From: Leidyana gryllorum EB-2025a
Lineage: Eukaryota > Protista > Apicomplexa
Direction: 5' to 3'
Assembly: GCA_048772705.1 (NCBI GenBank)
Contig: JBLWGC010000115.1
Location: 1 to 64,000 of the forward strand
DNA: 64,000 nucleotides
The translations under genes and the position numbers were made by a program. Shown piece by piece: positions 3,350-44,181 of the stretch (positions are counted from its first letter, which is position 1; every line of letters begins with the position of its first letter). The notes under the pieces were generated by a model. That model searched no databases. It was not told where the DNA came from and was given only the letters and a program-made list of their open reading frames with translations.

Positions 3350-3564
3350 TTCTTTCCCTCAGGCACGATTCGCGGTATGCCGCCACTGTTTGACGCCGAA
3401 GCTCTACACCACACGTGTGTGTTCACATGGGCTAGCTACGTATCACAGCTTGAAGCGATCGTGCATCCGACTTCTCGCGGCCATTGAATAGTAGCCCACG
3501 CGGCTGGCATAAAATTCGTCAACAAGTCCGCCAAATTCACACTTGAGATTTGTCAAAGAGGCAA

Positions 3565-5116
3565 ATGACCACGAGACCAGCCGGCGGCCTCCGGTCCCTA
3601 TACCTGAGGCCAGATATTTCATGTGCGAAAGGGCGGGCGATTAGAAATCTGTGGGCTCGAAGTTTGAGTGGTCAAACCACGATTCAAGACTTGACTAATG
3701 TGATTGGGGGAGGCTCGGCAAAAGCTACCCCATTCCTGAACGCATTTAAAGAAGAATACAAGGAAGAGTGGGAGAGATTCTCAGAAGAGCTGCCGACGGT
3801 ATGTGAAGCTGTGCTGTTGTTACCATGGCAACTGGATCAATCATTGGCAAGGGAAGCATATGATTTACAGCGACCGAATGGTTTGACAGTTGCATCGGCA
3901 GTGACGCTCGGCGGTATTGAAACGCCAGACCACTTACGACTGGAGATCCCCCAGAAAAGTACAGTCTTGCGAGTACCATTTACTGTTCCCAAAGTTGTCA
4001 GCATGGTCACCGAAGTGACACCTCTGGCCGACATTGAAAACATTATACTTCGTCCCCTCACAACTTTTTCTCTTGTGGGAGCTTTAGTCCTTGGCGTGTC
4101 AGCGGAGTTGTTACGAGGCCATCCTAATTACACGTTGGAATCATTCTGGCCGAGCGACGAAGCAGAGAGCACATACTATGCGAAGAAGGCGCACAAACGA
4201 TCGGGGTGTCAAATGGCCAAATGGAGGGCTTTCTGCCACTATCTGGCCAGCACCGCTCCCAACATAACCAGCTGTACTCGCGCACCGCTTCAAATCACTT
4301 TCAGAAGACTCTTACGTCCTTGGACGTTGGAGGGTCTAGCGCAGTCGAAACAACCTTTACTCCGTCCGAGGCTCATTGGTCTACAGAACGTCCCACAGGG
4401 CACCCCCACTCGGAATCAAGAGATGCCAAACAGTTACGTTGTCGACTTTGCCCACTATACGGGAGGTGGTCATTTTCTCAGATCCGGTGAGTGTTCAGCA
4501 AATATGTGAGCGTTCCAACGAGCATTGCCGCACAGGGGCAGCACAAGAGGAGTGTTTGTTCACGCAATTCCCAGAGTGCGTTGTATCAATGCTCGTGACG
4601 GCTGGAATGGAGGATTTGGATGCATATGTTATGGAGAATTTGTACGCAGCCGTCGAGTACGATGGGTATATGGAGAGCTTGCGAGTCAGGAAGCTATTGC
4701 CGGTTGATCAACAAGTGCCTGTGGACATGGTGGTGGTGGATGCCACAGCTTTCCGGAGCAATGAGGCCAAGATGGTGAAACAATATGAGCCGCCAGCCAT
4801 ACTGAGAGAGCTGAACAAAGTGACAGCTGCACTAGTCAACTGTAACAGGAGTAAAACTTATTCAACTGGCAACTGGGGATGTGGTGTCTTTCGAGGTGAT
4901 CCTGTCCTCAAGTTCCTGATTCAGTGGGTAGCGACTAGTGAGGCTGGAGTGACAATGACATACTTTCCGTTTGATGACAAGTTGCTGGCTGATCTGGAAC
5001 GCGTTATGAAACGCGTGGAAAATCTGAGTGTAGGGGATTTATGGGATCGGATGATCAAGATCGCGGCAACGCCACTGGGCCATAGGACGTATCTCGCCAG
5101 CTTTTTTTCGTTTTGA
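3565..5116 (+). CDS. PARG: Poly(ADP-ribose) glycohydrolase-like protein, copy 1 (intron 4487-4535)
   Basis: Spliced sequence gives VDFA..GGG..GAAQEECLF..FPE and STGNWGCGVFRGDP.LKFLIQW PARG motifs; 49-nt GT-AG intron joins the two ORFs in frame. Confidence 0.85.
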
Positions 5117-5118
5117 CA

Positions 5119-6778
5119 ATGATGGACACCCACTCTTATCGGAAGGTGCGAACTTTGAATCGTCCACCTCACTCATGTCCAAGCAGCGGTCCAAGCTTCC
5201 TACCCAAGTTACATGCTGCGGCGATCAAACGTGAAGTCACTCCCCAGATGCTCGACAAGGCTGTTTGCGGCGAGGGGATGGCCACTGTGATGTTCAAGCG
5301 AATGGGTGGTATACAGTTCGAGGCTCTGGTTGCGATACTGCCATTTGTGTTGGAATGTGTGTTCTCATTACCAGCTCAAGTGGCTGGTCGCGAGTTGGAT
5401 GAAGGTGTTCGATGGCAACATATCACTCAGCCCTGGGCATTTGAGAGAGGAGGCTTTCGAGAAGCCCACACCAACAATCGTGTTCTGTTGCCTCAAGAAG
5501 GGAAGCCCCAGGCCTGGATAGTATTGCCCTACTTTGCAGGCAATGGTCAGACAGCCGACGAAGCGGCGAGTGGGGGGCGTATACAGACGCCCGCGACTTT
5601 TATCTCTCAAGTGGCTGATGGAAGTTGTGAGATTGACGATCAGATTATTGTCTTGACACCCCTCACAGCCTTTTCGCTGGTTTCTTCACTGTTATTTGGG
5701 TACGAAGCCGTGGCTCAAGATGCTACGCAGTGCCCGTTCACCCTGAGGGGCTTCTTCCAATACCAAAAAGAGTGTCAGTATCACAAACTGATCTGTTTGA
5801 TTAATTATGTAATCACTAATGCCCATGCTTTGCTGCGTGATCTACCGCGAGCGCCTGTGATATTCGAATACCGCACTTTGAACAGAGGATGGGATACTCA
5901 GTCATTAGATACTGTGGAATGCGTACTTCAACAGGTCAAATTTATTGACCCGAAAGCCGCCTTTGTTCCGCCAAGCAAGGTGCAAGAAGTGCAAGGCGCC
6001 TGGGTGGTTGACTTTGCGGACCGTGTCCCTGGTGGCTTTGCACTCACGTGGGGTACCGCGCAAGAGGAGCTTTTGGTTTTACAGCATCCCGAAGCTCTTT
6101 TACTGCCCCTTTTCTGTCCTGTGATGGGGGATCTCAATGCTATTCGTGTCCGTAATGTGCTTCCCACGGTGGAGTATGATGGATATGAGGAAAGCTTCCG
6201 AGTCAAACACCTTTGGGAGGTGAAGCCGAAACTCAGCATTGACATCCTGGTGATCGATGCTATTGACCACACCGAGAAACGAAGTCGACTGCACTCTCCG
6301 ATGCAATTAACCCTACGCGAGATCAACAAACTCACTGCAGGCCTGGGGGAGACGCCAGGTCGGCTTGTATCAACTGGTAAGTGCGGCGTTGAATGATCAA
6401 ATTAAAAATCGTTGGGCTTCAGGGAATTGGGGTTGTGGACACTTTGGCGGTGACATTGTACAAAAGTTCCTCCTGCAATGGCTGGTCGCCAGCATTTATG
6501 ACTGTCCCATCATATACTTCTCCTTTGATTTGAGTGTTCAGGACACACTGATGAAAGTGCGACGGTTGGTGGACGAATATCAATTGAGTGCTCGTGAGCT
6601 GTGGCGATACATGAGAGCAGCCATAGAGTTACGGCCGAAGCAGCCGTTTGGTACAGCCTTTGAGGAGATAATGATATCAACGGAGGAAACTGGTCGACGG
6701 CTGGCCTGCACCTCAGGGCTCAAGGAAGCATTTGAGCAGGTAGTGGGAGAAAAACAGCTTAGCAGCGCAAAAAATTAA
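5119..6778 (+). CDS. PARG: Poly(ADP-ribose) glycohydrolase-like protein, copy 2 (intron 6377-6422)
   Basis: VDFADRVPGG..GTAQEELL..HPE and spliced STGNWGCGHFGGD..KFLLQW; shares LxPLTxFSLV and VEYDGYxES with copy 1. Confidence 0.83.
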
Positions 6779-10370: not shown

Positions 10371-11372
10371 CTACGCATTGAAGCCTGGCATCCTCTCTGC
10401 AAACGCTTTCTGGATCTTCTCCCTCACATGGTAGGGATCTTTGGGTGCGACGGTTGTGGTACTGACCGCTCCCGTAACCTCTGCGATCTTATCCTGCGTC
10501 AACAATACCATACCCCCAGCGCCAGCGACCGGATCACCGTGTCCCTGTTCGAGTAATGACTTGACCACGCCTATCTGCCCATCCTCGGGCAGCTTGTCAT
10601 ACGGCACAGCACCCCACACGGGCAGTTTGTGCACTTGCGATACGACTCCAGCTATCTTCCGGGGCGCTCCGTCCGGAGTCTTGTCCACGTCACCGTGGAG
10701 CGTATGACCAGCTGAAGCCAGTGCGCTGTCTTCTGTACTCAGCTTGGCGAGAACATTATCCTTTTCGCCTGGTACAAACGAGCCCCGCAAGGTTTCACCT
10801 AAATCCTGGGGACCGCCTTTCTTCTCCTCCGGCTTCTTGGGGGACTCGTTGTTCTTATTGTTGTTGTCCTTGGCCGGATCGCTGCTGGCATTCTTCGCTG
10901 CCGCCTCCTCTGCCTGCTTCCTGGCTTCGTCTCTCATGGCACCGAAATCCATGGCTTGAGCGGACCGGCTGGGCTCGTCGTCAGGCTCCAGCGACATGGG
11001 TCCTCGACGCAGATAGCTGCGGGCGTTGGTGGTTGTTGGGAGACTGGCGCCCCTACGTCTCGGGAGAACGTAAGAGCCCACGTTGGCGAAGCTCATTACC
11101 TCCCTTGAGGGAGTTGCGTAGTTCGGCCCGAATGCCCAGTTAGACATCCAGGGGAATCCTCGGAGGGCTGGAGGGAGCGCAGGCCACCACCAACCAGCAG
11201 AGGGATCCAACCCCTGAGTTCGAGCTAGCCAGTTCTGCTTCGCTGGAGACATGAGAGCACAAGGACCAGTTGAGAAGGCGGCAGGCGTCGGGTGGGTGGT
11301 CCACGGATACGAAGGTAGCAACGACCACGCATTCGCAACTAGAGGAAGAAGCGCCAAACGAACGAGCGACAT
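10371..11372 (-). CDS. Secreted orphan protein, cluster gene 1 (W/P-rich N-half, SRSAQ motif)
   Basis: 333 aa ORF; signal peptide MSLVRLALLPLVANA; EPSRSAQ at ~10956-10970. Confidence 0.75.
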   Translation of the reverse strand: MSLVRLALLPLVANAWSLLPSYPWTTHPTPAAFSTGPCALMSPAKQNWLARTQGLDPSAGWWWPALPPALRGFPWMSNWAFGPNYATPSREVMSFANVGSYVLPRRRGASLPTTTNARSYLRRGPMSLEPDDEPSRSAQAMDFGAMRDEARKQAEEAAAKNASSDPAKDNNNKNNESPKKPEEKKGGPQDLGETLRGSFVPGEKDNVLAKLSTEDSALASAGHTLHGDVDKTPDGAPRKIAGVVSQVHKLPVWGAVPYDKLPEDGQIGVVKSLLEQGHGDPVAGAGGMVLLTQDKIAEVTGAVSTTTVAPKDPYHVREKIQKAFAERMPGFNA

Positions 11373-11714
11373 GGTATCTCGATGGCAAGCGTCGATGGGA
11401 AAGAGAAAAGCTCGGTCCGAGTATGAAAACCTCGCCGCAGCTTCGTGTCATTCGACACGCATCGATGGGTATACCACGTGGTGGTGGGAGTAGTACTCTT
11501 TTACACTCAGATTGTATTGGAGAGAACAATAATGCACTGATCGCGGGCCCTCCGCACATCATAATCGTAGCCGTCCGTACGGACGCTCCCAACTTGTAGC
11601 CTCCGCCCACCGTAATTACTATTCTTCATGTTGACACCAACTCACACTCTCCAGACAAGCAGTGTAGAGAGTTATGAATGTGTGTGTTCGCGAGACGCTT
11701 GGCGACGCAATCAA

Positions 11715-12662
11715 TCACACATGCAGACCCGGCAGCAAACCTTCCTGTTTACCTGTACCCGATGGGGCATAATTGCCGTCCTGGGCTTTCTGCAAGCGCT
11801 CTGCAAAGTGTCGACGTCGTTCCTCCGAGAGTCCCGTTCCTCCACCTCCCAGGGATTCGCGAGCAATGGCAATGCCTGGATCAACAGTGGTGGTGGTGGT
11901 GGTCGTCGTCGTCAGAGGTCCATCGAAGGATTGACTTTCCCTATTGATGGCCCCGTCAGTTGCATCGCGTCTGGCCTCCGCCTCCGCTCCTGCCTCTTTG
12001 GTGAATTTGGCCTTGTCGGCCTCACTGGCCCCCAGGGGTCCCAGCAGACTGGCGTCGAACTGCTTCTGCATCTCCAAGAGCCATTGATCCTTGACGTAAT
12101 TCACTCCATAGTTCCACGAGGGCAGTATGCCTTCGGCCACTCCGGCGGTCATGTCGTTTTCTCTGAGCTGATTCCAGATCTCCGTGTCGGGCCGAATATA
12201 CCCATTCTCATCAAAGAACCCGAAACCAGTCTTAAGATTCGTCAAAAGGGCATTCCCTTTGCTCAGACGGTCGGGTATGATGCCTTTATTGACCACAGCC
12301 GCAGGATTCACGGGTAATCTGGCATCGCCTCCAATTTTTGAGAGTTGTTCCAACATTTTGGGATCGAGGCCAAAGTCGCTGGGTAACGCTGAACGCACAT
12401 TCTTGAGCGGACCCGACAGCGGGTCGGCTTCCTGCACAGAGCGCGACACCCCGCCCGACGACTCAGCAGATTGAGAAGATCGGGTGGAGGATGCGGCAGG
12501 GAGCTCATAAGGCACGAGACGCGGCACAGGGATCGGGACATAAACCGGCGTCACCTCGAATACGGGCAGATGAATGATTTGTGGTGCAGCTATGAGGTTA
12601 CTCCGAGCCCAGCCTGTCATTATTCGGTCGATGAGGGACAGGAAAAGCCCACAGCCGACCAA
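11715..12662 (-). CDS. Orphan cluster gene 2 (PIPVP motif, RSSQ and RSVQ); true 5' end unresolved
   Basis: APQIIHLPVFEVTPVYVPIPVPRL and GVSRSVQ; ORF begins at TTG, possibly with an upstream exon. Confidence 0.7.
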   Translation of the reverse strand: MVGCGLFLSLIDRIMTGWARSNLIAAPQIIHLPVFEVTPVYVPIPVPRLVPYELPAASSTRSSQSAESSGGVSRSVQEADPLSGPLKNVRSALPSDFGLDPKMLEQLSKIGGDARLPVNPAAVVNKGIIPDRLSKGNALLTNLKTGFGFFDENGYIRPDTEIWNQLRENDMTAGVAEGILPSWNYGVNYVKDQWLLEMQKQFDASLLGPLGASEADKAKFTKEAGAEAEARRDATDGAINRESQSFDGPLTTTTTTTTTVDPGIAIARESLGGGGTGLSEERRRHFAERLQKAQDGNYAPSGTGKQEGLLPGLHV

Positions 12663-13338
12663 AAAGTCTCACTGTCTGCACTGTATCTCCTTATTCGCCC
12701 GGGACAAGCCGTCTCGATCCGACTGAGGCAGACAGAAAAGTGTCATAAGGTTGGTAGTTCGACCTTAAGCTGGCGAGAAGGTGGAGGCATTTCTCCAATG
12801 TCTGTTGGGCCCAACGAATCTCTTCCTCGTTTTCCACTTTTTGAAGCATCACACATTGCGACACGGCCCCGTCTCGTCTGAGACCTCTTACTCTGTTGAC
12901 CAATTACGCGTCTCCTATCTGTGGTGGGAGTATTTATGGCCACAAGGCGACATGAGACACTGGTGAGCGACGCTTATGTGTCGCCAGACGACATTGGCAC
13001 TGTAAGAAGATCGCTGAAGCCGTATCGAATAGCGGGGGTGACAAGTTTGGGAGTTTGAGAATCTGAACGTTTGGAGGGTACTCCCCTCGGAAACGTTCTG
13101 TAGGAGACGCCGCGCTGCGCTGCGCCGCGCCGTAGAGGCACAGCAAACGCAACTCGTGTCTCCAAGTGGAACGGTGTGGTGAGAGTCGTCAATGGGTGTC
13201 TCCCGCGACGACAGTGGGAGAGTGGTGCCAGGGTTGTGGAGAGACATTTGGTCACTATTTCTTCCGAGAAGGAGGAATCTTGAATGTGTGGGCGTACTGA
13301 TGATTGTTGAAACGAGGGACAGAAAAGCAAACTAACTC

Positions 13339-14096
13339 ATGAGAGCGAGCTTGCTTCTCACTGCGGTAGCGTGGGCTAATGGATGGACGTCTCCATGCGC
13401 CCCTCCCCAGGTGATCAGGACACCTATTTATCGTGTCAACGAGGTGCCATGTGAGTCGTGTCATGATGGACACCAGCACATATGTTGTCTCAGTCCCGAT
13501 CCCTGTGCCACAATTCTTTCCGATGGGTGGAGCGCGGCCGGTGAGTCAAGTTGATATCTGTTTGTATGGGGTCTCAGACGGTATTGGCGAACCAGAACGG
13601 GTGGGGCGGAGGTGCTGCCCATACATTTCAGGCTTTGATGTCTGATCACGCTGGGAGGGGGGCCTCCCGAGGTTCTGATGAGGGCCGAAAGGGGAGAGGT
13701 GGAGGGGAGAGATCGACTTCCCAGATTTCCGGATCCTCGTCGGATGAACCGAAGCGTACCACCCAGTCTCACGTGGAAGATGAGGACAACACGCACGAAT
13801 TGATTGTGAAGGGAGGGGACGGCGCGAGTGGACAAGGTATCATAATGAACAACCACGGTATTCTGAGTGGAACCAATACTGGTGTGTCTCTGCATGTGCT
13901 ATCTTCCGTGGGAAGTGGAGCCAAGTATCGCACAGTCGAAAACGAAGAGAACAAGGTGAACATTGTCAGAACCAGTCGACGGAGTGTTGGAGACCAGCAA
14001 GAATTAGAGAAGGAGGGAACTGCTCTGGACATTGGTCGCGTAGCGAAAGGCGACCAGCAATTACAAGTAGCCCCTTTGGTGTCCCCAAATGAATGA
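13339..14096 (+). CDS. Secreted orphan, cluster gene 3 (introns 13451-13493, 13541-13577)
   Basis: Spliced MRASLLLTAVAWANG-WTSPCAPPQVIRTPIYRVNEVPFPIPVPQF...; both introns GT-AG and frame-restoring; C-terminal NNHGILSG module. Confidence 0.75.
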
Positions 14097-14124
14097 AGTC
14101 GCCGGTAGGCGAAAAACTGTTGCT

Positions 14125-14595
14125 ATGCGTTGGATCACAATTGTAAAGTGCGTGCTTGCCCACCAAGCAATCTACCTCCCTCAGTTTACCTTCCGTACCG
14201 TTCCTGTGCCGATTCCGGTGCCACGATATGTACCAACGCTAATGCAGCCGCCCCCCAGCAGCACAGTCGCTGATCGGAATCAGGCATTACGGGGCAGAAG
14301 ATCAGCGCAGGCGACCGGAAGCAAGAGTGTGCAAGGGATCGATAGCTACAGCGATAGCTACAGCGACAGCGAGAGCTACAGCGACAGCGAGGAACCTGTT
14401 GATATCAACTACTACAATGGAGGATCTGCGAATGAACAGACATCGATGCAATCTCAGAACTCAGGAATTGGATCGGCGCTTCAGGTGCTGCTGGATCTTA
14501 ATGTCATCGCTGGTCTTCTGAGCAAGCAGCAAACAGTCGATAATCATGCGTCACGGCTTAATGTCAAGGGTCAGTCGGGACAGAGGCCGGCATAA
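14125..14595 (+). CDS. Secreted orphan, cluster gene 4 (PIPVP, RRSAQ, DSYS repeats)
   Basis: MRWITIVKCVLA-HQAIYLPQFTFRTVPVPIPVPRY; RGRRSAQ; NSGIGS..IAGLL..NV module. Confidence 0.75.
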   Translation: MRWITIVKCVLAHQAIYLPQFTFRTVPVPIPVPRYVPTLMQPPPSSTVADRNQALRGRRSAQATGSKSVQGIDSYSDSYSDSESYSDSEEPVDINYYNGGSANEQTSMQSQNSGIGSALQVLLDLNVIAGLLSKQQTVDNHASRLNVKGQSGQRPA

Positions 14596-14660
14596 CCGGT
14601 TCCTCCCCATTGACTGAAAAAGAATCTGAACGTACACAATACGTGACAAGCATCATCGCA

Positions 14661-15498
14661 ATGCGCGCGACTTTGCTATGCCCAGTGCTCTTGACTGTCC
14701 TGGCGACAGCTCATAACTGTATTAAAACCCCAACAACTAATGCTGCCCTACTTCGCAGTCGTGCCTTTGGCGCACCGGCACTACAAGGGATCGGTATCGG
14801 AGCAGGCGCCGGAGTCGGAGCCAAAGCGGGTGTTAGCACCCAGGGTTTCGGGGACTACTACAACCGCCCCTACTGGAATAATTACTGGCGTCCGTTTCTG
14901 ACCAGTTCGGCCTACTCCCGTCAACCCTCCTTTGACAGCTATCAGGCTGGACCCAACCGTGAGTTCTATCTGGCAACATCGAGTTTGATCAATGATACCA
15001 ACAGAGGGAGGTTCAACGCTTATCGGCGGTGGAAGCGGCCGTCAGGCTACCGTGCAGAGCTTGGATGAGAGGGTTGAGTCGCACGACGGTGGTATGTCCA
15101 ACATGGGTTGGTCAATGTCTGAGAATGCCGCGGGTGCACTCAATGACTTTAGCTTCGCCGCCAAGATCTGGGCACTCCTGTCACACATCGCCAAGGACGA
15201 CCAAGACACATCCCGCAGTGAAAGCTTCACCGACGTCGGCCCTGACCACCCCCAGCGTGAGGTTATGGCGGTGGCCCCCAGTGGCCCTAACGACGTCCAC
15301 CGCGAGCTACCTTACCCCACCAAGACCATAAATACCAATGCTGGTGAGGGTAATGTGGGCTTCCACCATGGTGTGGACAATCACGGTCTCGGAAACGGCC
15401 TCTCCGGATACCTCCAAATCATGGCCTTCCTCGCCGACGTTTTCAACTCGGAGCGGAAGGCGAGCCGGACCCGCAGTGAAACTAATGTCAACTCCTGA
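14661..15498 (+). CDS. Secreted Gly/Tyr/Trp-rich orphan, cluster gene 5 (intron 14959-15004)
   Basis: Signal peptide MRATLLCPVLLTVLATA; GIGIGAGAGVGAKAGVSTQGFG; 46-nt intron joins the ORFs in frame. Confidence 0.75.
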
Positions 15499-15792
15499 TC
15501 GCCTTTTACCTCCCACCCCTCTTGGAGAATGTAATCTGTAAATAACCTTCTATCGAACATTTATACTCTACACGCTGTAATGGCTCGAACTGACAACTCC
15601 TGACGACTTGGCGTGCCTATCGAAACAACACCGCCCCGGGCAAGCAGGCATTTGCGGGTGCGCGTTGCTTTTCCGCACCCCAATGGGAAAGGCAGTCAGC
15701 CATCTCGTTAACGTCCCGCGGTCCCGCGGCCGGTGAAAAGATCTCCATTTTCCAGTCGGCACTGCCTCAGCATCTGACCATAGTTGACCAAC

Positions 15793-16256
15793 ATGTACAG
15801 GTGGATTGTATCTACTGCTCTTGTAGCGCTTACGCGCGCGCACTATTATGATGCGTACGCATCACAGAGCTGCCCGCCACCTCAGATATACTATTGTGAG
15901 TCGCGAGAGGCCTCGAGACACGTTATATTCATTCTTCTCCTCGCTATTCAGATCCTGTGTACCGAACTGTCAATGTTGATTGGCAAATTCCGTATCCCAC
16001 CTTCAGTGCTCCCAGCACACAGGCGGTGAACGCACCCGTCGTGGCAGAACAAGGCCTCGCACGATCAGCGCAAGCGTTCCACGGAATCAATAACGTTTCG
16101 GGCGGACAGTCGAACAGTGGGGGCGGCTCCACCGTCGGTTCCAGTGGCGCCCTGAACGGTGTCAATTTGGCCGCGAAGGGTGCCGTTCTCTTATCCAACC
16201 TCCTCGCCAAAGAACAAACTTCTCGCTGGGACAGCAGTTCGATCTCGGCGCACTAA
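15793..16256 (+). CDS. Secreted orphan, cluster gene 6 (intron 15896-15951)
   Basis: MYRWIVSTALVALTRA-HYYDAY..CPPPQIYYYPVYRTVNVDWQIPYP..GLARSAQ..SSGALNG module. Confidence 0.78.
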
Positions 16257-16323
16257 TCGCAGGCCCAGGGACACTTTGCGTCATATGTGAAAACATACAT
16301 TGTTTAGTAATCGCAATGCTCCT

Positions 16324-17079
16324 ATGCATCATATGTTAATCAACCCACTTCTTATTCTATATCACTATTTGGAGTGCGTTCCTGCTCTCTCACGTATCAA
16401 TGGATCAGGTGGGGTGGCCCTCCAGCTTCCGAACTATACACAAGTGGACTTTGTTCAACCCCCCCATTTCGGCACCACCGTAGCTCAGGTCGAACATGAT
16501 TCTGACAGCTACTTATCGCAATCGCCAGCACAAGTTGGGCAAACCGGAAGCTTGCGCGCTCAGGCCGAACAACCTCTTCCAATCAGCACTAACCACCGAG
16601 CACCACACCAACTTGTCGTCGAGGCTGGCGCGATTCACTCCAATGCGCTCAGAGGGACTTCCACAGACCGTAAAAAAGACATCCCCCACAACAGTGGGAT
16701 CGACCCAGTAGCTGACGACCACTTGGAAGCTGCCCCCCCAACGACCAGCAGTACCACTTCAAACCGGCTGCAGCCCGTTAGGCAAAACTCAAATGCACCA
16801 AGCCAAAGAAAGACACAGCCGGACGAGGCGAAAGCAGTGATTACCAGCCCAACGACGACGACTACTACACCCTCACTGACGAAAACGCACATTTCCACAA
16901 CCACACCTGACGCTCTCACAAGTTCGGAAGAAGACTCAAGTGTGCTAAGACACAATGACGCATCGAGAGACTCACAATCCATATTGAATAGCTTTGTCAA
17001 TAAAGTCAATGAGTATCGTTTACGGCGAAAGAAGCTTTTCAGACCGGGCCAACTGATTCCGGTGACGACGGAAATGTGA
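16324..17079 (+). CDS. Probably secreted Thr/Ser-rich (mucin-like) orphan, cluster gene 7
   Basis: Hydrophobic N-terminus (MLINPLLILYHYLECVPA); poly-Thr; C-terminal PGQLIPV resembles PGQVVPI in gene 8. Confidence 0.65.
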   Translation: MHHMLINPLLILYHYLECVPALSRINGSGGVALQLPNYTQVDFVQPPHFGTTVAQVEHDSDSYLSQSPAQVGQTGSLRAQAEQPLPISTNHRAPHQLVVEAGAIHSNALRGTSTDRKKDIPHNSGIDPVADDHLEAAPPTTSSTTSNRLQPVRQNSNAPSQRKTQPDEAKAVITSPTTTTTTPSLTKTHISTTTPDALTSSEEDSSVLRHNDASRDSQSILNSFVNKVNEYRLRRKKLFRPGQLIPVTTEM

Positions 17080-17137
17080 TTTAGGTTTTCAGCACCTCCA
17101 GCAGGCTTGATAGGAAAAGTGTGCATATCGCATCCAA

Positions 17138-17906
17138 ATGATGCGGAAGCTCGTGTTCTCAGCCGTTCTGGCAATTGGAAGTTCTGCAAGCGATTGGGGT
17201 TTCCTCGGATGGGATACCGGTCTTGCTCGTTCCGCTGGCCGTCACCAAGCCGTCGATGAAGAATTGCAGTTGGCACTCGCCTTGCTGAGCATTCCCCCTC
17301 CGCCTATATCGAACTTGCCTCCGTTGGTGATCCCAGTCCCGTTTCCGGTGCAAGTGCCGGTGTACGTGTCAGCTCCGACTACCGCCGGTGTTTCGCGGAC
17401 TGCGCAATCTTTGCGGGGTGGCGGTTCAGCCCCTCCCGCCGGAGCGGCAGGTGGCTCTTTGGTGAAGCAGGTGCAGGGGACGGCGAGGAAGTCTCTCGAA
17501 GATCTGGTAGACGGTGGCAAGCATGAGCAGGACGTCAACCGTCCTCTTACACCTTATCATCCTGGTCAGGTGGTGCCCATCGAGGAGGTTTCCAACGGTA
17601 AGGCGTGAGATATCTGAGGGTTATCGAGCATCAGCTCCTCAATCGGTTGACAGAGACGGAGTAGCGAGGAGCGTTCAGGCCGCTGAGGATGGTGGCGAGC
17701 CCCAAAATCACCACCACCACCACCATGGTGGTGTAGGAGATGTTCGTCAAATCTTTGGAGGAGATTCGTCGCAACAGACAGTTCTGCAGGATGGTAACAA
17801 AGGTATTGGGGTGGCTAACAATTTCTACACCTCCCTCGGATTGCTCGACAACTGGGGATCGCAGAAGCAGACAACGCAGAAGAGTTCCAATCAACTGACG
17901 TCATGA
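17138..17906 (+). CDS. Secreted orphan, cluster gene 8 (intron 17598-17634)
   Basis: Signal peptide; ARSAG, VSRTAQ, VARSVQ; IPVPFPVQVP; His6 tract; NKGIG module. Confidence 0.78.
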
Positions 17907-17923
17907 GCTCAGCCGGATTGTTA

Positions 17924-18655
17924 TCAACGTTGGTGAATCGTAGTATTCTTCTTTTTTACGTCTTTGCCGCGATACTCGCCGCCTGCGATACCCGCAAGTA
18001 TTGGCAACTCACCGCTGAAAAACATGTTTGTCAGTATCCCTTCTCCCCCCTTTTGATAATAAGCATTGTCTTCTAGATCATCTCCCGTGAAGGTCATCTG
18101 CACAGATCGCTCGGGAGTTTTGCCGTCCTCGCCGTCAGACTGTGGGGAGGCTTTGGGCGACGCCTCACCGGCCTCCACGTCTTGACTTGTTACGGACCAC
18201 TTGGAGGAACTGGTGAATGCGGTTGCGGGAGAACCAGACACAAAGGTTGTTGGAGGACCGGGCTGAGCGTACACCACTGTGGTGCTGGGCTGGGTGTAGA
18301 CGACGCTAGCAGGCGGGGGACTGTAAAATACAGTCGATCCTCCTCCAAGAGCCGTAAAAGATGGAGTGCTTCCTGGTATCACCACGATCTGTGTCGTGCC
18401 TCCCGCCACACCCGGACTGTATGACACGGTGGAGGACGACGAAAAGTCGACTTGGTACTTCGGAATGTTCCGAGCTGTCATAACAGCTTGAAGGTATGCG
18501 CGCCGATCGTTTTGAGCCGGAAATAGGCCTTCATTGCCGTACCCAGGCAGCCGGCTCGCCATGGGCCGACCATATTGCAAGTGGACATGAGGGAGCCATC
18601 CACAAGAGGCTTCCGCCAGGCCATGAGCGATAACGAGACCAATCACGTGTCTCAT
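17924..18655 (-). CDS. Secreted orphan, cluster gene 9
   Basis: MRHVIGLVIAHGLAEA; repeated TV(S/F/V)Y(S/T/A)xP units; ERSVQ; GEGIL..LAGIA module. Confidence 0.75.
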   Translation of the reverse strand: MRHVIGLVIAHGLAEASCGWLPHVHLQYGRPMASRLPGYGNEGLFPAQNDRRAYLQAVMTARNIPKYQVDFSSSSTVSYSPGVAGGTTQIVVIPGSTPSFTALGGGSTVFYSPPPASVVYTQPSTTVVYAQPGPPTTFVSGSPATAFTSSSKWSVTSQDVEAGEASPKASPQSDGEDGKTPERSVQMTFTGDDLEDNAYYQKGGEGILTNMFFSGELPILAGIAGGEYRGKDVKKKNTTIHQR

Positions 18656-18830
18656 GAGAGATGCCCCGAAGCTTTTTCTCGGGAGGGCTCTACATAAGTC
18701 CCATCAATAAGCCCAAGACCGTCACTGCTTTTACTCCTCCGGTGCTTACAACTGGGTGGGCTGCAGTCATATTACGTCTCATATTTGGTCAGTTAATGGC
18801 ATATAGCAGTAGCGTTAAGAATGTGCGATT

Positions 18831-19390
18831 CTAATAACGGCGGTGACTGTACATATTGGTCAGGTCGATGTTGCTCGAGGATGATTGCTGGTTGTTCGCG
18901 TCTCCGAGAACTCCGTTCGCAACGTTAGCACGGAGGCTTCCACTAGCGCCGTTGAGGGCACCGTTTTCCATGTTACGGTGGTTAGTCACGCGAGCTGCGT
19001 CGTCATTCTGAGATCCGCTGGGCAACGCTTGGGCGGTACGCGACAAGCCACCACGAACACCGTAACCACGATTCCACCAGCCGCCTGCCGTTCGAAGCAT
19101 AAATGTAGCGTCCTTCACCTCACTCACGGTTGTATCTACCCCAAGGATAGTAATTACGGCGGCCCCAGCCACCCCAGGGTCCGTCCCACTCTCCGAAACC
19201 TGTTAGGGGGAGATTTGTTGTTGCCAGTGCATGTTCACTAACCTTGGGTGGAGACACCAGCACCAGCACCAACGCCGACCCCGAGCCCCGCAGGGCTGGG
19301 TGCAGTGCCTGCGGTATAAGCGGTATAAGCGGTATCACAGTGGGCTGTGGCCGCAGCGATCAGAGCAGATCCAATAATAGCAAATTTCAT
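18831..19390 (-). CDS. Secreted Gly/Trp/Tyr-rich orphan, cluster gene 10 (introns 19200-19242, 19085-19127); paralogue of gene 5
   Basis: Manual splice: MKFAIIGSALIAAATAHCDTAYTAYTAG..GLGVGVGAGAGVSTQGFGEWDGPWGGWGRRNYYPWGRYNRGWWNRGYGVRGGLSRTAQ..; two 43-nt introns; missed by the ORF track. Confidence 0.8.
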
Positions 19391-19556
19391 GTTGCCTTAA
19401 GTTTGTCCAGTTGTGAGGGACCAGCGGTCAACCATGAAAGGAGCATTTTTCATACAATCCCAATGACCCATCATGCCTCCCTCATCTTTCGTGGGAAAAT
19501 CGGGAGGAAGTGGGTCGCAGAATCCACACCGTAGAATATACACTGTTCACTCAGAG

Positions 19557-19573
19557 CACACACACACACACAC
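19557..19573. repeat. (CA)n microsatellite
   Basis: cacacacacacacacac in the intergenic region upstream of cluster gene 10. Confidence 0.7.
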
Positions 19574-19702
19574 CGTGCGTACGGCACTCAGCCCCGCTCA
19601 ATCAAAAAGCAGCAGTAAAGCCCCAGATGAACATACTAGACATCAGTATTACACATTTATGCAGAATCTATGCGATAATGCACCGGTCGCGGAAAGCTTT
19701 TT

Positions 19703-20156
19703 TTACGGTGAACCTGTCGGCAGCCCTATGGGCCGATTAGCGATATATCCCTGGGCTGTTCTTGACAACGGGCGCTCGGTGCGATGCAGCGACGCGATAA
19801 TAGTGTCGTCGATCCGGCCGGTTCCGGAGCCCCTGTGCCGCAGCAATAGAAAGGGTTGCCCAAATGTTGAGAGCGCAGACACAGGGCCTCTAAAGATTCG
19901 CAGGTGATCTCACCTTGTCGAGCAGTACAGCCTCCTCGGGACTGGAGTGCGTGAGTTCTCTCAGTCGCCTGCGGTGCTGCTGATGACATCCGTTCCGCTG
20001 TGTGGCTCGCCCATAGTACCCGAAATACGAGGGCTTTCTGACGAACCCTCTAATCGGTCGTCTGGACCGGAAAGGTCGCAGATACCATGAGTGACCCATC
20101 ACTAGATTGCACCAGATGGGGATCAAAAGGATCAGAATCAGAGTAGGAACTCGCAT
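19703..20156 (-). CDS. Secreted Arg-rich orphan, cluster gene 11; 3' exon structure unresolved
   Basis: Signal peptide MRVPTLILILLIPIWCNLVMG; a downstream frame encodes ..RPLSRTAQGY..* (SRTAQ at 19751-19765, stop at 19703). Confidence 0.5.
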
Positions 20157-20484
20157 ATTGTCCCGATAAGGGTCACTTTTTCATTAGCCAGCGGTGGTAA
20201 AGTGACGTCGGTGTGCTTGACGAGCTGCCCACTGTTCATCCCTGGTTACACAATTTACATAGGAAGGCTCCCGAGCAAGAAAAGACGAGAAAGTACCAAT
20301 GTGGGGTGTATCTGGTGTATAGGAAGATTATTACTTTACTACTTGTCAGAGTGTAGAAACAAAGTGTCTTCCGGTTCCCAAAGGTTATATAATAGGCGAG
20401 AAAGCAATAAAGGAATACATCATACTCGTTCTGATGTCGTCATCGAGGCGGTCAAAGTGGCAGGTATGCTGCTTCGAGAGCGAA

Positions 20485-20793
20485 CTAAGGGATTGGCAGA
20501 CTCGGAGTTGACGGGAGAGCTCCAGTGGCTCCACCAGTCACTGCCCCAGCACCTGCGAGAGGGTTGGGGAAGCCGATCGACCCCGAGAAGGTGGCCGAAG
20601 GGAAGAAGGGCAAGAACGCAGGAGGAGTGAGACCGAAGCTGTAGGTAAAGTCGGCCGGGCCCCGGAGTATCGGCCTCGCGAAAGGACCCAGTGCAACAGG
20701 CGGAGTGTAGCAGGGATGCATCGAAGTCTTATAATAGTCGTACATTCCCATCGCGGGGGTCAACAACAGAACGAGTGACGTATATTTGAGCAT
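20485..20793 (-). CDS. Small secreted Pro-rich orphan, cluster gene 12
   Basis: MLKYTSLVLLLTPAMG signal peptide; YTPP..PFAR motif also in gene 14. Confidence 0.7.
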   Translation of the reverse strand: MLKYTSLVLLLTPAMGMYDYYKTSMHPCYTPPVALGPFARPILRGPADFTYSFGLTPPAFLPFFPSATFSGSIGFPNPLAGAGAVTGGATGALPSTPSLPIP

Positions 20794-20883
20794 TTTTGTT
20801 CCCAGCGTGGTATTACTATAATACTTAGGTATCGTTGATTTCTTGAAAAAGCGTGAATACCGTCCCAGTGGGAAGCGGTTTGG

Positions 20884-20915
20884 GTGTTCCCTGAGCTATT
20901 AGTGTTCCCTGAGCT
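20884..20915. repeat. Perfect 14-nt direct repeat (gtgttccctgagct x2, 4-nt spacer)
   Basis: Seen directly; ~90 nt upstream of the ATG of gene 12. Confidence 0.7.
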
Positions 20916-20973
20916 TCATCTCATACTATGAGATTCACAGACAAATATCCGATCATTCGTACGATCTTAACAC

Positions 20974-21681
20974 TCATTGTAAAATAACATTTCCTCCTGC
21001 CCCGCGAGGCCACCATGGCGGCGGCGGGACCTCAGGATCCCCTCCCGGTGGCTGAGTGGCTCCCGGAGGTAGCGTTGGGGCGACTGTCGGGATTGGAGTA
21101 GGTAGCGGAGGTCCTGGAGTTGTAATTGGCGGTGGTAAGGTCGGCACTGCCGTTGGTCCAGTAGGCGGGAGTGTCGGCACTGCCGTTGGTAAAGTCGGAA
21201 TCGGCGGCGGTAGAGTTGGAATTGGTGGCGGTAAAGTCGGGATCGGTGGCGATAAAGTCGGGATCGGTGGCGGTAGAGTCGGGATCGGTGGCGGTAGAGT
21301 CGGAAACGGCGGCGGTATCACAATTGGAGGCGGCCAACTATGCGAATGGTGGTGATGGTGGTACCCATTTGGTGGCCAAGTTCCCGGAGGGTAGGTTCCA
21401 GGGGGATAAGTTCCAGGGGGATAAGTCCCGGGAGGATAGGTGCCAGGAGGATAGTGGGATGCCTTATGGCTTTTGTGCGACCCCCAATACGCAGGGGGGA
21501 CGACGAAAGGGGGTCCTACAGGAGGTCCAATAGGGGGTCCTGTGGGAGGGCCAATAGGGGGCCAATTCCATAGTCCGCTTTTCTGCTTCCAATGACTATT
21601 GGTTCAGGTGGCAGGGACGCCTCCATACCCCTTATACCAGGCTTTGTAGGCTTGGTGAGTTAGGTATGGATTGGCGTACAT
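20974..21681 (-). CDS. Extensin-like Pro/Tyr/His-rich protein, cluster gene 13 (intron 21596-21628)
   Basis: Spliced MYANPYLTHQAYKAWYKGHWKQ..(GPP)n..(YPPGT)x5..HHHHHSH..(PTLPPPI)n; 33-nt intron restores frame; no obvious signal peptide from this ATG. Confidence 0.7.
21125..21454 (-). repeat. Coding tandem repeats: 15-nt YPPGT x5 (~21380-21454) and 21-nt PTLPPPI units (~21125-21310)
   Basis: Tandem units visible in DNA (ccagggggataagtt; gtcgggatcggtggcggtaga). Confidence 0.85.
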
Positions 21682-21870
21682 TGAATTGCGATATATATAT
21701 TTCTTTGCCTCATGGTTTGAATGACCTAGTGCTTCTAGAGCCAGGACAAAGACCGCAAGTTTTTGGCGCATCCTTTCAAGGAGCTCGGGTTGGGGTTTTT
21801 ACAATGACCGAGCGGAAAGAGGGTGAGATTTCTTGGAAAAGCCGCCTCAAATGTCCTGGTCACTGGGTCA

Positions 21871-22569
21871 TCAGATGTTAACATTGTCCTCCTTGTAATT
21901 CTTATTCTTGAATTTCCCCACCAGACCAGACAGAGCGCTAGCACTAAGCCCAATGCCGCCGTTGTTCAGTCCAGAAGTAAGCTCCTTGCCCTCACCGAGC
22001 TTAGTCTTCACTTGGGGGACAGCTTTGGAGAGGTCGGTCGCATCCCCCAAGTCCATCTTTGGCGATTTCTGCGATCCTTCTCCCGCCTGATCTCCGAATG
22101 CTTGCGCGGATCGAGCGGGCTCCCGGCTCTTCTCGTCAGTTGACTGGGCTGCTGACGCCTGCCCTCTTTTCCCTGTTGTCGCCAGAAAGCTGACAGGCCT
22201 CCTATTGCCAGTAGCCGTGGGTGTGTGGTCCACTTCTTGAATCCGCGCGGAAGGCCCTCCGTAGTAAAAGGGCGATAATCCGGGTGAAAGCCCCCATCGA
22301 GGGAACGAAATTCGCTCATCCTCCAAGAAAGGAAATAAAGGATCGATAAACGGGGACAGCCTCTTGGCAAGCGAGAAATCCGGGAATGTGTTGATCCGTG
22401 TGTACCTGCTTTGACGGGCAAATGGCGGAGTGTAGACCGCTGGCAAACGAGACAGGATGGGAGTTCTAGTCATTCCATCCAACATGCGATAGGCGTATTC
22501 CAGGCACGGTACATTCCCACTGACTCCACACGACACTAGTCCAAGCAAGTAGATCGTACCGACTCGCAT
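21871..22569 (-). CDS. Secreted orphan, cluster gene 14
   Basis: MRVGTIYLLGLVSCGVSG signal peptide; EPARSAQ; terminal GLNNGGIG..LSGLV..NVNI module. Confidence 0.75.
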   Translation of the reverse strand: MRVGTIYLLGLVSCGVSGNVPCLEYAYRMLDGMTRTPILSRLPAVYTPPFARQSRYTRINTFPDFSLAKRLSPFIDPLFPFLEDERISFPRWGLSPGLSPFYYGGPSARIQEVDHTPTATGNRRPVSFLATTGKRGQASAAQSTDEKSREPARSAQAFGDQAGEGSQKSPKMDLGDATDLSKAVPQVKTKLGEGKELTSGLNNGGIGLSASALSGLVGKFKNKNYKEDNVNI

Positions 22570-25133: not shown

Positions 25134-25784
25134 ATGCGCGTACCGATTCTTGTCAGCTTATTTTATGTGTCAACAGCGACTGGTGATTGGTTCAAGAAGA
25201 AGAAGAACTACGGCTTCAGACCGCTATCGCTCTACGATGACTACGACTATGATGACGACTTCCGATCTCTTCGGCGGTCTCAACGGCCAATCATCATCGA
25301 AAGCCCATCGCAGCAGTATCCGCCCATCATAGTGCAACAACCAAACCCTAATGTCATGCCGTGTGGACAATGTCAGACGCCATGTGCAACCTGCAATCAA
25401 CAGCCCAGTACAACACCACCATGGATGTTCTATCCGCCGCCACACTACTATCCGCCTCAATACCCACCGTACTATCCTCCTCAGTATCCTCCTCAGTATC
25501 CTCCGCAGTACCCTCCACAATACCCTCCGCAATATCCGTCATACTCTTACGGGGGCCGCGGTACCGGCCACGGCGACGGCGGACTGCTGCCAAACTTGCT
25601 GGATACTTTGCTGGGCGACGGCAAGCACACTGATGGGAATCTCAGGCGGCTACCTGCTGTGGCAGGACCACCCGGTGCTCCAGGAGTGCCGCAAGGGACA
25701 GGTCATGGTGATGATGGCCTGGTGCCCAACCTCTTAGACGCTTTACTGGGCGACGGGAAACATACAGACGGCCGAATGAATTGA
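25134..25784 (+). CDS. Secreted Tyr/Pro-rich wall-like protein with (YPPQ)n and two GHGD-PNLLD repeats, cluster gene 18
   Basis: Signal peptide; CGQCQTPCATC; YPPQ tandem repeat; two 26-aa repeats. Confidence 0.8.
   Translation: MRVPILVSLFYVSTATGDWFKKKKNYGFRPLSLYDDYDYDDDFRSLRRSQRPIIIESPSQQYPPIIVQQPNPNVMPCGQCQTPCATCNQQPSTTPPWMFYPPPHYYPPQYPPYYPPQYPPQYPPQYPPQYPPQYPSYSYGGRGTGHGDGGLLPNLLDTLLGDGKHTDGNLRRLPAVAGPPGAPGVPQGTGHGDDGLVPNLLDALLGDGKHTDGRMN
25429..25517 (+). repeat. Coding 12-nt tandem repeat (YPPQ/YPPY)
   Basis: tatcctcctcag-type units repeated about 7 times. Confidence 0.85.
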
Positions 25785-25876
25785 GCGAACGTGTGTGAGA
25801 CACCGCGTATCCTCTTGCCTCTCTGTGCCCTTCAAAAATCGTGAACCTCAATTGTACTACTTAGATCTCGGTGTCA

Positions 25877-26359
25877 ATGATCCGCGCTCTGTTGTCTCTC
25901 GTGTACATGCTAACGAACATTCATGCTCATCATCCAGTCTATGGTGGATACTACCCCCATAAGCATCACTTGCGGCGAGCCTCGCTGCCGATGTACCCGT
26001 ATTCCATGGGTTATGGCATCCTTCCCCCGTCACCAATTCTTTCCTATGAACTGTCTGAGCTCACGTCTCCTTATTGGCCAATTCAGTCGGCTGGATACTA
26101 CCAAAGCGGTCTGCCTCTGTACGGTGCACCAAGTGCGTACCTGGCGCCATCTGCAGCGTCTCCAATACAGATTTTCCCCGGCGGAGTGCAGGTACTTGAC
26201 AGCCGACGATACCGAGGTTCGTCTGGAGGTCACCTGCGTCTCGCAGGTATCCGAACGGGTCACGGAGACGACGGAATAATCCCCAATCTCCTGGATGCCT
26301 TGTATGGGGACGGTCGATTTACGGACGGGAAGCTTATCCGCCTTACGTATGAAGATTGA
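25877..26359 (+). CDS. Secreted Tyr/His-rich protein with one GHGD-PNLLD repeat, cluster gene 19
   Basis: MIRALLSLVYMLTNIHA signal peptide; TGHGDDGIIPNLLDALYGDGRFTDG. Confidence 0.78.
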   Translation: MIRALLSLVYMLTNIHAHHPVYGGYYPHKHHLRRASLPMYPYSMGYGILPPSPILSYELSELTSPYWPIQSAGYYQSGLPLYGAPSAYLAPSAASPIQIFPGGVQVLDSRRYRGSSGGHLRLAGIRTGHGDDGIIPNLLDALYGDGRFTDGKLIRLTYED

Positions 26360-26492
26360 CAGAGGATTAAATAGTAGAAGACTCGATTGAAGATAGTTAG
26401 AGAACCGTAAAACGCCTGAAATGTGCATGTTGAGAAGTCAATCGGAAAACCAGTGTCAATTCACATACAATATTGAGTACATTGCAGAAAGC

Positions 26493-27947
26493 ATGCGTCC
26501 GCTTATATTAGCACTCGTCAGTGTTTTAGTCAGCGGAGATGTGTCCACTGACCCTCCTGCCGAGCGAATTGAAGTGGTTGATGAGGCCCCACTGTTTGGA
26601 GAGCCATCAACCCCCCGAAATGAAAGGGCACTAACGGAATTGGACATTGAAGAAGCTGTTGCCCGCCTTGAACAAATCATACCTTCAATGTCTCCTGAAC
26701 TTCTGAGAACAGTTATCAGACAAGAAGATGGGAGCCTCTCTCTTTCGCTGGTCCCACCGGCTCAACAAGTTGCGATAATCTCTGCTGCATTGGCATACGC
26801 GGTGGGAGATCAAGTTCCTGAAGTGGCACGTTCGACTCCGACGGCTGCCGCTCGTAGTGCCACAGAGATCACTATCCCTTTTTTACCTCTGGTTCCCCCA
26901 CGCATCCAGTTGCCGCAGGCTCTCGTCCAGCCGCGGGTTCCCAACTCACCTCCCGTGAGTAATGGTTGGGGTTTCCTTTCGGACGACTGGATGCAACAAT
27001 ATGTGGTACAGCCGCTGCAAGCAGCAGCTGCAGCGAATCCGCTGCTCAACTTCAATCCTGCGGCTCATCGCGGTCTCAAGCAGACATCAGAGCCCCCCCC
27101 CTCAGTGGGTGAGGCTCCGAAGGCTGAGGGCGGGAATATGTTGAGCGACGAGGTGCTGGCTGGTATGGAAATGAGTTCTGATTACTCAGATGAATTCAAG
27201 TGGTTTGTTAAAGAGGTAGCAAAAGCGCAAGGTGATATGGACAAATTGGTCGACGTCGTTCGGAAGTACTTTACTGAGGTGAAGCCTCCGCGACCTCGAC
27301 GACTCACGGCACAGTCGGACGGAACTTTTCAAGAGAACGTGAAGCTGAGCGCCAAATACTTGAAAGAGCAGCTTGGAAAGGACGCATTCCTGGCTCAGCC
27401 CATCCCTGAGGTCTATCTCAAAGCTTCGCGCACATTCCTTCGGGCGCTGCCTCAAGAGGTGCAGGATACTCTGATGGATAATCTCAAACGCCTCAGTCCT
27501 GCTCAGGACGATACAGCATTTATCAGGTACTTGTCGGAGTTCCCAATTGCTGAGACTGACCGATCTGCCACGCTCTTTTTGATAAGATTCCGCGAAGCAG
27601 TTCGGGCCAAGCCGTCTCCTCGTGCAGCGGCTCCGTCTTCTGTCAAGGAGCCGGCGTCTGAGACAGCTTCCGCGCCTCAGCAACGGGCTGAGGTCAGTAG
27701 TGACGGCTCAGCCGCAAAACGCACCGATACGACAGACAGCGCTTCCAGGTTCCTCCGAGGTTTCCTCTTGCCGAAAGATGCTCTGCCGTTGGCTGCTGAC
27801 TTGCCGCCGCCGCCGCCGCGTTCTCAGCTCCCAGCTTACGAAGATTTGGCGGGAACGGATCCGGTAGTCAAACAAATCGAAGACAACCTGAAGCACACTC
27901 TCAAACTCCCTCTTCAGTTTTTCGCTGATCTTCGCAATATTTGGTGA
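26493..27947 (+). CDS. Secreted largely helical orphan, cluster gene 20
   Basis: MRPLILALVSVLVSG signal peptide; ARST, ARSAT and RRLTAQ motifs. Confidence 0.75.
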   Translation: MRPLILALVSVLVSGDVSTDPPAERIEVVDEAPLFGEPSTPRNERALTELDIEEAVARLEQIIPSMSPELLRTVIRQEDGSLSLSLVPPAQQVAIISAALAYAVGDQVPEVARSTPTAAARSATEITIPFLPLVPPRIQLPQALVQPRVPNSPPVSNGWGFLSDDWMQQYVVQPLQAAAAANPLLNFNPAAHRGLKQTSEPPPSVGEAPKAEGGNMLSDEVLAGMEMSSDYSDEFKWFVKEVAKAQGDMDKLVDVVRKYFTEVKPPRPRRLTAQSDGTFQENVKLSAKYLKEQLGKDAFLAQPIPEVYLKASRTFLRALPQEVQDTLMDNLKRLSPAQDDTAFIRYLSEFPIAETDRSATLFLIRFREAVRAKPSPRAAAPSSVKEPASETASAPQQRAEVSSDGSAAKRTDTTDSASRFLRGFLLPKDALPLAADLPPPPPRSQLPAYEDLAGTDPVVKQIEDNLKHTLKLPLQFFADLRNIW

Positions 27948-44019: not shown

Positions 44020-44181
44020 CGTGGTTCTAGTAACAAAGAAAAGTCTAATCGAAAGCCGCAAAAACTAAAAGGGGAATAGCTCGCACACCTTCTAGATTTT
44101 AACTGAACGAGACACTTGTCTCCCTCACACAGACCACTCGAGATGTTAGACACCAATACAGAGACCACTAGTCTATCACTA

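Follow-up and report, generated by a model that had tools for sequence, protein, structure and literature searches.

The window analyzed here is a 64-kb stretch of contig C115 in a 237-contig, 15.5-Mb genome (GC content, ~53%), and it carries an island of ~19 small genes (referred to here by number, from g1 onward) flanked by genes for an Mtr4-like helicase and a Prp43-like helicase. Eight of the island genes share the tetrapeptide R[ST][AV]Q, which forms the core of an eight-residue site selected at the protein level. On balance, we favor the interpretation that this site is the recognition sequence for an endoprotease of the secretory pathway, probably a subtilisin, in the precursors of what are probably wall or coat proteins.

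The motif occurs in frame nine times in 8 of the 14 clustered genes with signal-peptide-like starts (once each in g1, g2, g4, g6, g9, g10, and g14 and twice in g8), and every site listed in the initial annotation is present, including the variants RTTQ (g3), RSSQ (g2), and RSAG (g8). One extra match, at 15168 on the minus strand, is antisense to g5. A six-frame count gave 11 matches in 12.2 kb, compared with 1.6 to 1.8 in Markov simulations, and at the DNA level the eight complementary codon patterns have 507 matches genome-wide, corresponding to 0.4 expected in 12.2 kb versus 9 found (Poisson probability, about 5e-10). Since the motif had been picked post hoc, we applied a look-elsewhere test in which all X[ab][cd]Y patterns were scanned over 15 cluster sequences. 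R-S/T-A/V-Q and its subpattern ranked at the top, being present in 8 of the 15 sequences versus 0.17 expected, and shuffling the sequences locally or globally 1,823 times never produced an equally strong pattern. Background long open reading frames (ORFs), taken from the rest of the window and from fetched loci, contained 1 match in 35,677 residues (2.2 expected), and the long ORFs of the remaining window contained none. The recurrence of the motif noted in the initial annotation is confirmed.

When aligned on the Arg, the ten sites are nonrandom from position -3 to position +4 only, with random residues beyond, and the extended site reads [GE][PVL][SA]R[ST][AV]Q[AS]. The four flanking positions, which were not used in defining the motif, gave P values of 0.001, 0.011, 0.011, and 0.0005, and the eight-residue width matches the subsite footprint of a protease. 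At each of the ten aligned sites, the third residue of the core is Ala, Val, or Thr, and nine of the ten are monobasic, with g3 having KR. All six Arg codons are used at these sites, Ser is encoded by both TCN and AGC, Gln is encoded by CAA and CAG in a 5:5 ratio, and third positions are scrambled; no real DNA similarity between the genes was found with blastn. The codon spread and the blastn result rule out a DNA-level motif or a recent duplication, and selection therefore acts on the peptide.

The site lies 59 to 183 residues from the protein start, not directly behind the signal peptide. The N-terminal half is rich in Pro and aromatic residues, whereas after the site Pro is lost and acidic residues, Gly, and Asn are gained; almost every carrier shows a drop in Pro plus aromatic content at the site, in agreement with the boundary between a Pro/aromatic part and a polar part described earlier. 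We propose that the precursors would be ordered as a signal peptide, a variable Pro/Tyr/Trp-rich half, the eight-residue site, a variable polar linker, and a module of ~50 residues rich in Gly, Asn, and Leu. The precursor would be split at the site by an endoprotease, with a member of the expanded subtilisin set as the most likely candidate, and the two products, one rich in aromatic residues and Pro and the other bearing the module, would then be deployed separately, probably in building the wall or coat of the gametocyst or oocyst.

The position of the cut can be suggested only tentatively. The Arg-Ser/Thr bond lies at the center of the eight positions, which favors cleavage after Arg, although with low confidence; cleavage after Gln, as R-x-aliphatic-Q, is only slightly less likely, and the core four residues would then occupy P4 to P1 of a subtilisin, with a small residue at P1'. 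Cleavage between Ala/Val and Gln by an aspartyl protease is improbable. The registers after Arg and after Gln both point to subtilisins, which occupy about 18 loci in the genome (36 matches to S8 exons), including tandem arrays and one locus on C115 at 125 kb. Tandem S8 arrays are located at C35:276050-291495 (about seven genes) and C43:348430-358927.

The same enrichment and evidence of selection would also fit if the site, as a conserved short linear motif, were bound or modified and not cut, serving, for example, as a wall-granule sorting tag, as a phosphorylated or glycosylated Ser/Thr, or as a cross-linking Gln. The invariant Ser/Thr and Gln imply more two-sided side-chain specificity than many proteases require, and no known protease consensus matches. 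However, the invariant Arg between small residues, the disordered context, and the compositional joint look like those of processing sites, and neighboring genes that lack the motif carry RRL or RxL at comparable joints (true RRL in g11, g17, and g19). We therefore regard binding or modification as a fairly unlikely role for the site.

The initial annotation described the carriers as otherwise poorly alignable, but most of them are detectable paralogues. With the motif masked, an N-terminal proline motif is common to g2, g3, g4, g6, and g8 (PQ..P[IV][YF]..PIPVP in g2), g5 pairs with g10 and g6, and g17 pairs with g18. The Gly/Asn/Leu module is present at the C-terminal end of g3, g4, g5, g6, g8, g9, g10, and g14; leave-one-out hidden Markov models (HMMs) gave P values of 0.002 to 0.008, weaker once close kin were dropped, and these values are confirmation and not discovery, because the module segments had been chosen by eye before testing. 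A tail repeat in g17 and g18 weakly resembles the module (P = 0.02 for g17), and an AlphaFold model of the module was of low confidence (predicted local distance difference test score, 52) and uninformative. Judged from these similarities, most carriers are old paralogues belonging to a locally expanded family, and their sites are therefore not independent draws.

Such kinship would also be expected if the site were simply the best-kept part of an ancestral fold or assembly unit and had no signal role of its own; it might, for example, form the first strand of the Gly/Asn module or cap it. The module homology in eight genes, the shared N-terminal motif, the g5/g10 pair, and the genome-wide limitation of the motif to the island agree with this explanation, but the linker between site and module varies in length by tens of residues, the site occurs without the module in g1 and g2 and is repeated two to three times in g8, and the module occurs without the site in g5. 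This loose coupling suits an autonomous short motif, and we consider an origin as a mere fold remnant unlikely.

The reach of the motif was assessed with six-frame codon-pattern counts, a poor substitute for counting in a proteome: extended codon patterns versus reversed controls gave 19 versus 12, 21 versus 14, 111 versus 111, and 19 versus 30 matches genome-wide. Readable matches outside the island were all in noncoding frames, no second dense motif cluster was seen in the genome-wide match lists inspected by eye, and none of six signal-peptide-like background ORFs carried the motif. Because whole-genome counts are near those of controls, no similar concentration was seen elsewhere, and most carriers belong to a single paralogous family, the motif appears to be a family trait and not a general secretome signal. 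A further pattern with Arg (CGN) and with Ser after Gln, CGNWCNGYNCARTC, has 96 matches genome-wide versus 34 for its reversed control; these are scattered and in part belong to a tandem repeat. The 250 genome matches to one degenerate pattern are tRNA-Leu genes and were discarded as an artefact of that pattern.

A genome-wide export or sorting signal like the Plasmodium export element (PEXEL), cut by an enzyme of the plasmepsin V (PMV) or ASP5 type, is very improbable: although the genome has about six aspartyl protease (PF00026) loci and the motif begins with Arg and ends with Gln, as do some PEXELs, ASP5 and PMV no longer cleave once Ala replaces the P1 Leu, and they also disfavor Val (PMC4764566), the extended patterns show no genome-wide excess (111 versus 111 and 19 versus 30), and the sites lie too deep in their proteins. 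Of the earlier suggestion of a "protease cleavage or trafficking motif," what remains is thus a protein-level motif, selected at a joint of secreted proteins and best read as a protease site, while the general PEXEL-like signal is not supported, given the near-control genome counts and the largely single family of carriers.

Outside the window, a profile of the module found three held-out tandem hits on the minus strand of contig C230 (176822-178496; E values, 0.011 to 2.5), which probably represent a second cluster of the Gly/Asn-module family. One R-S-A-Q-S pattern match lies among these hits on the same strand (177424-177437; chance probability, about 0.035), out of frame with both neighboring module hits unless an intron is present. 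Further minus-strand motif pattern matches occur on C230 at 158220 and 166366.

Several observations weigh against subtilisin processing of wall precursors. The shuffle statistics ignore the shared ancestry of the carriers, and the motif fits no characterized apicomplexan protease consensus. The g5 protein keeps the module but lacks the Arg, carrying RQATVQ where its paralogues have the motif, and g3 has RTTQ. The kexin P domain (PF01483) was not found in the genome, a weak blank given that the control matched in only 1 of 14 genomes; the fourth domain of S1P (PF23090) was also not found, again a weak blank, as control genomes likewise had no match; and a weak blank was also obtained for the trypsin domain in the genome. 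Homologue searches with the single-exon genes g1, g2, and g19 were empty, with no orthologue recovered, and what points to a wall role is composition and analogy. Our literature search found nothing tying RSAQ to cleavage in parasites. Similarly, Pfam, PDB, and the ESM Atlas (with spliced genes compared exon by exon) gave no credible match for the carriers, and exact look-ups were blank. Synteny searches via the flanking Mtr4 exon returned matches only from distant eukaryotes, and those via three contigs with gregarine-like pyruvate:NADP oxidoreductase genes led to unrelated neighbors.

The gene models of the island were built with canonical short introns (37 to 56 nt), which are predictions; the models are uncertain at the start of g2, at the g8 junction, and for g11 and g13. 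By a crude heuristic, all island genes have hydrophobic starts except the second part of g13. On the minus strand, g1 (10371-11372) encodes 333 residues with a signal-peptide-like start, a Trp/Pro-rich N-terminal half, and RSAQ at residue 136 (10956-10967), and the module HMM did not detect the C-terminal module in it; g2 (11715-12662; ~315 residues, depending on the start codon) has RSSQ at 12471-12482 and RSVQ at 12432-12443. On the plus strand, g3 (13339-14096; three exons, with introns of 43 and 37 nt reading GTGAGT..CTCAG) has the variant RTTQ at 13755-13766 and the module at 13806-13970, and g4 (14125-14595; 156 residues) has RSAQ at 14299-14310, the sole site that also fits RxxR, and the module at 14407-14568. 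The g10 paralogue g5 (14661-15498, plus strand; two exons) has no motif and carries the module twice (15079-15240 and about 15367-15471), and g6 (15793-16256, plus strand; two exons, 56-nt intron) has RSAQ at 16062-16073 and the module at 16089-16253.

The g8 gene (17138-17906, plus strand) was modeled as two exons with a 49-nt intron (17605-17653) and has RSAG at 17228-17239, RTAQ at 17396-17407, RSVQ at 17667-17678 (all plus strand), and the module at 17745-17903; alternatively, its second part may be a separate overlapping gene starting from the ATG at 17523. Both g7 (17050-17079, plus strand) and the first part of g8 (17560-17608, plus strand) end in a similar PGQ-containing stretch, a resemblance relevant to the choice between a one-gene and a two-gene model of g8. 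The remaining carriers are on the minus strand: g9 (17924-18655; 243 residues) with RSVQ at 18098-18109 and the module at 17927-18097; g10 (18831-19390; three exons, two 43-nt introns) with a Gly/Trp/Tyr-rich N-terminal half, RTAQ at 19029-19040, and the module at 18858-19022; and g14 (21871-22569; 232 residues) with RSAQ at 22102-22113 and the module at 21874-22008. An RTAQ downstream of g11 (19751-19762, minus strand) is in an unplaced frame, not joinable to the g11 ORF via the canonical donor at 19913, and was excluded from the counts. In g13 (20974-21771, minus strand), the ORF with the signal peptide ends at a stop at 21604, beyond which a Pro-rich, extensin-like sequence runs on in the same frame, either across an intron or as a separate exon. 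Genes g17 to g19 (25134-27947, plus strand) belong to the same island and lack the motif but contain RRL or RxL (at residue 171 in g17 and, as RRLTAQ, at residue 269 in g19).

Elsewhere in the window, inspection of the ORFs by eye suggests two or three poly(ADP-ribose) glycohydrolase-like genes in tandem at 3550-6396 on the plus strand, and a pyruvate:NADP oxidoreductase fusion is encoded by a single ORF at 38617-44061 on the minus strand. The latter is nearest to that of Blabericola migrator (54 to 55% in the reductase part), followed by those of Gregarina sp. Poly1, Lankesteria, and Porospora; the closest enzymes are from gregarines, and the organism, a gut parasite, is therefore a gregarine. 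GC content, intron lengths, and tRNA abundance are similar to those published for Gregarina niphandrodes (PMC9250747), although the assembly differs in size. Mixed tRNA genes occur in dense fields of 9 to 15 per 3 kb on both strands (contigs C3, C5, C13, C34, C43, and many others), with about 240 tRNA-Leu(CAG)-like copies genome-wide, and ARAGORN also calls genes with CTA and TCA anticodons. At C2:48616-51636 lies a type I polyketide/fatty-acid synthase that includes an adenylation, a carrier, and a ketosynthase part.

To our knowledge, almost nothing is known about how gregarines build the gametocyst or oocyst wall. A defined eight-residue site in an orphan family, together with expanded subtilisins, offers a concrete substrate-enzyme test and a third comparison point for the evolution of Arg-initiated processing motifs (PEXEL, RRL, and RSRR) in Apicomplexa, although its significance is reduced in that the motif appears to be a family trait and not a new genome-wide trafficking code.

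Among known systems, GAM56 and GAM82 of Eimeria are encoded by clustered genes and have Tyr-rich domains flanked by Arg-initiated motifs thought to be processing sites (PMC5718062), and their processing shows a subtilisin-like inhibition pattern (PMC3770453). The island resembles them in its clustered genes for secreted proteins with poorly conserved Tyr/Pro/Gly-rich domains bounded by short Arg-initiated motifs. However, the GAM motifs (RxL, RRL, RNMG, and RRxG) differ from the site described here, and our carriers are smaller, less Tyr-rich (1 to 13% Tyr in the N-terminal half), and end in a shared Gly/Asn module; Pfam and database searches with g1, g2, g19, and others found no homology to GAM56 or GAM82. 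PEXEL (RxLxE/Q/D, cut by PMV) and the Toxoplasma export element (RRL, cut by ASP5) are likewise short Arg-first motifs of apicomplexan signal-peptide proteins, and the KAHRP PEXEL RTLAQ resembles our motif except for its Leu. In contrast, the present site is eight residues wide, far from the N terminus, confined to one family, and without the P1 Leu, its third residue being Ala, Val, or Thr throughout, and we reject both assignments. A furin/kexin site, for which R-x-[K/R]-R or a basic pair would have to precede the cut, is also rejected, since only g4 fits RxxR.

In Cryptosporidium, CpSUB1 cleaves GP60 at RSRR (PMC11411101). There, too, a secreted precursor is split in two on the Arg side by a parasite subtilisin, and g4 shares the RxxR pattern, but nearly all of our sites are monobasic and no glycosylphosphatidylinositol anchor was seen in the carriers. 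Plasmodium SUB1 sites follow I/L/V/T-x-G/A-polar, and Lys at P4 ablates cleavage (PMC3378952); if Gln is taken as P1, x-A-Q at the end of the motif is similar to the SERA4 site ITAQ, but P4 would be Arg (or Gly/Glu with Arg as P1), and a SUB1-type site is not supported. SKI-1/S1P sites have the form R-x-aliphatic-Z, and S1P prefers Leu at P1 (PMC8310232); RSVQ formally obeys this rule and the Ala-containing sites do so more weakly, with small residues following. We speculate, as an unlikely scenario, that in gregarines a subtilisin specificity new to apicomplexans (a monobasic Arg followed by Ser/Thr-Ala/Val-Gln on the prime side, or Arg at P4 plus Gln at P1) might release a self-assembling or targeting Gly/Asn/Leu module from interchangeable Pro/aromatic cargo halves, giving a modular cyst wall encoded over at least two gene clusters, unlike the dityrosine walls of coccidia and the cysteine-rich walls of Cryptosporidium.

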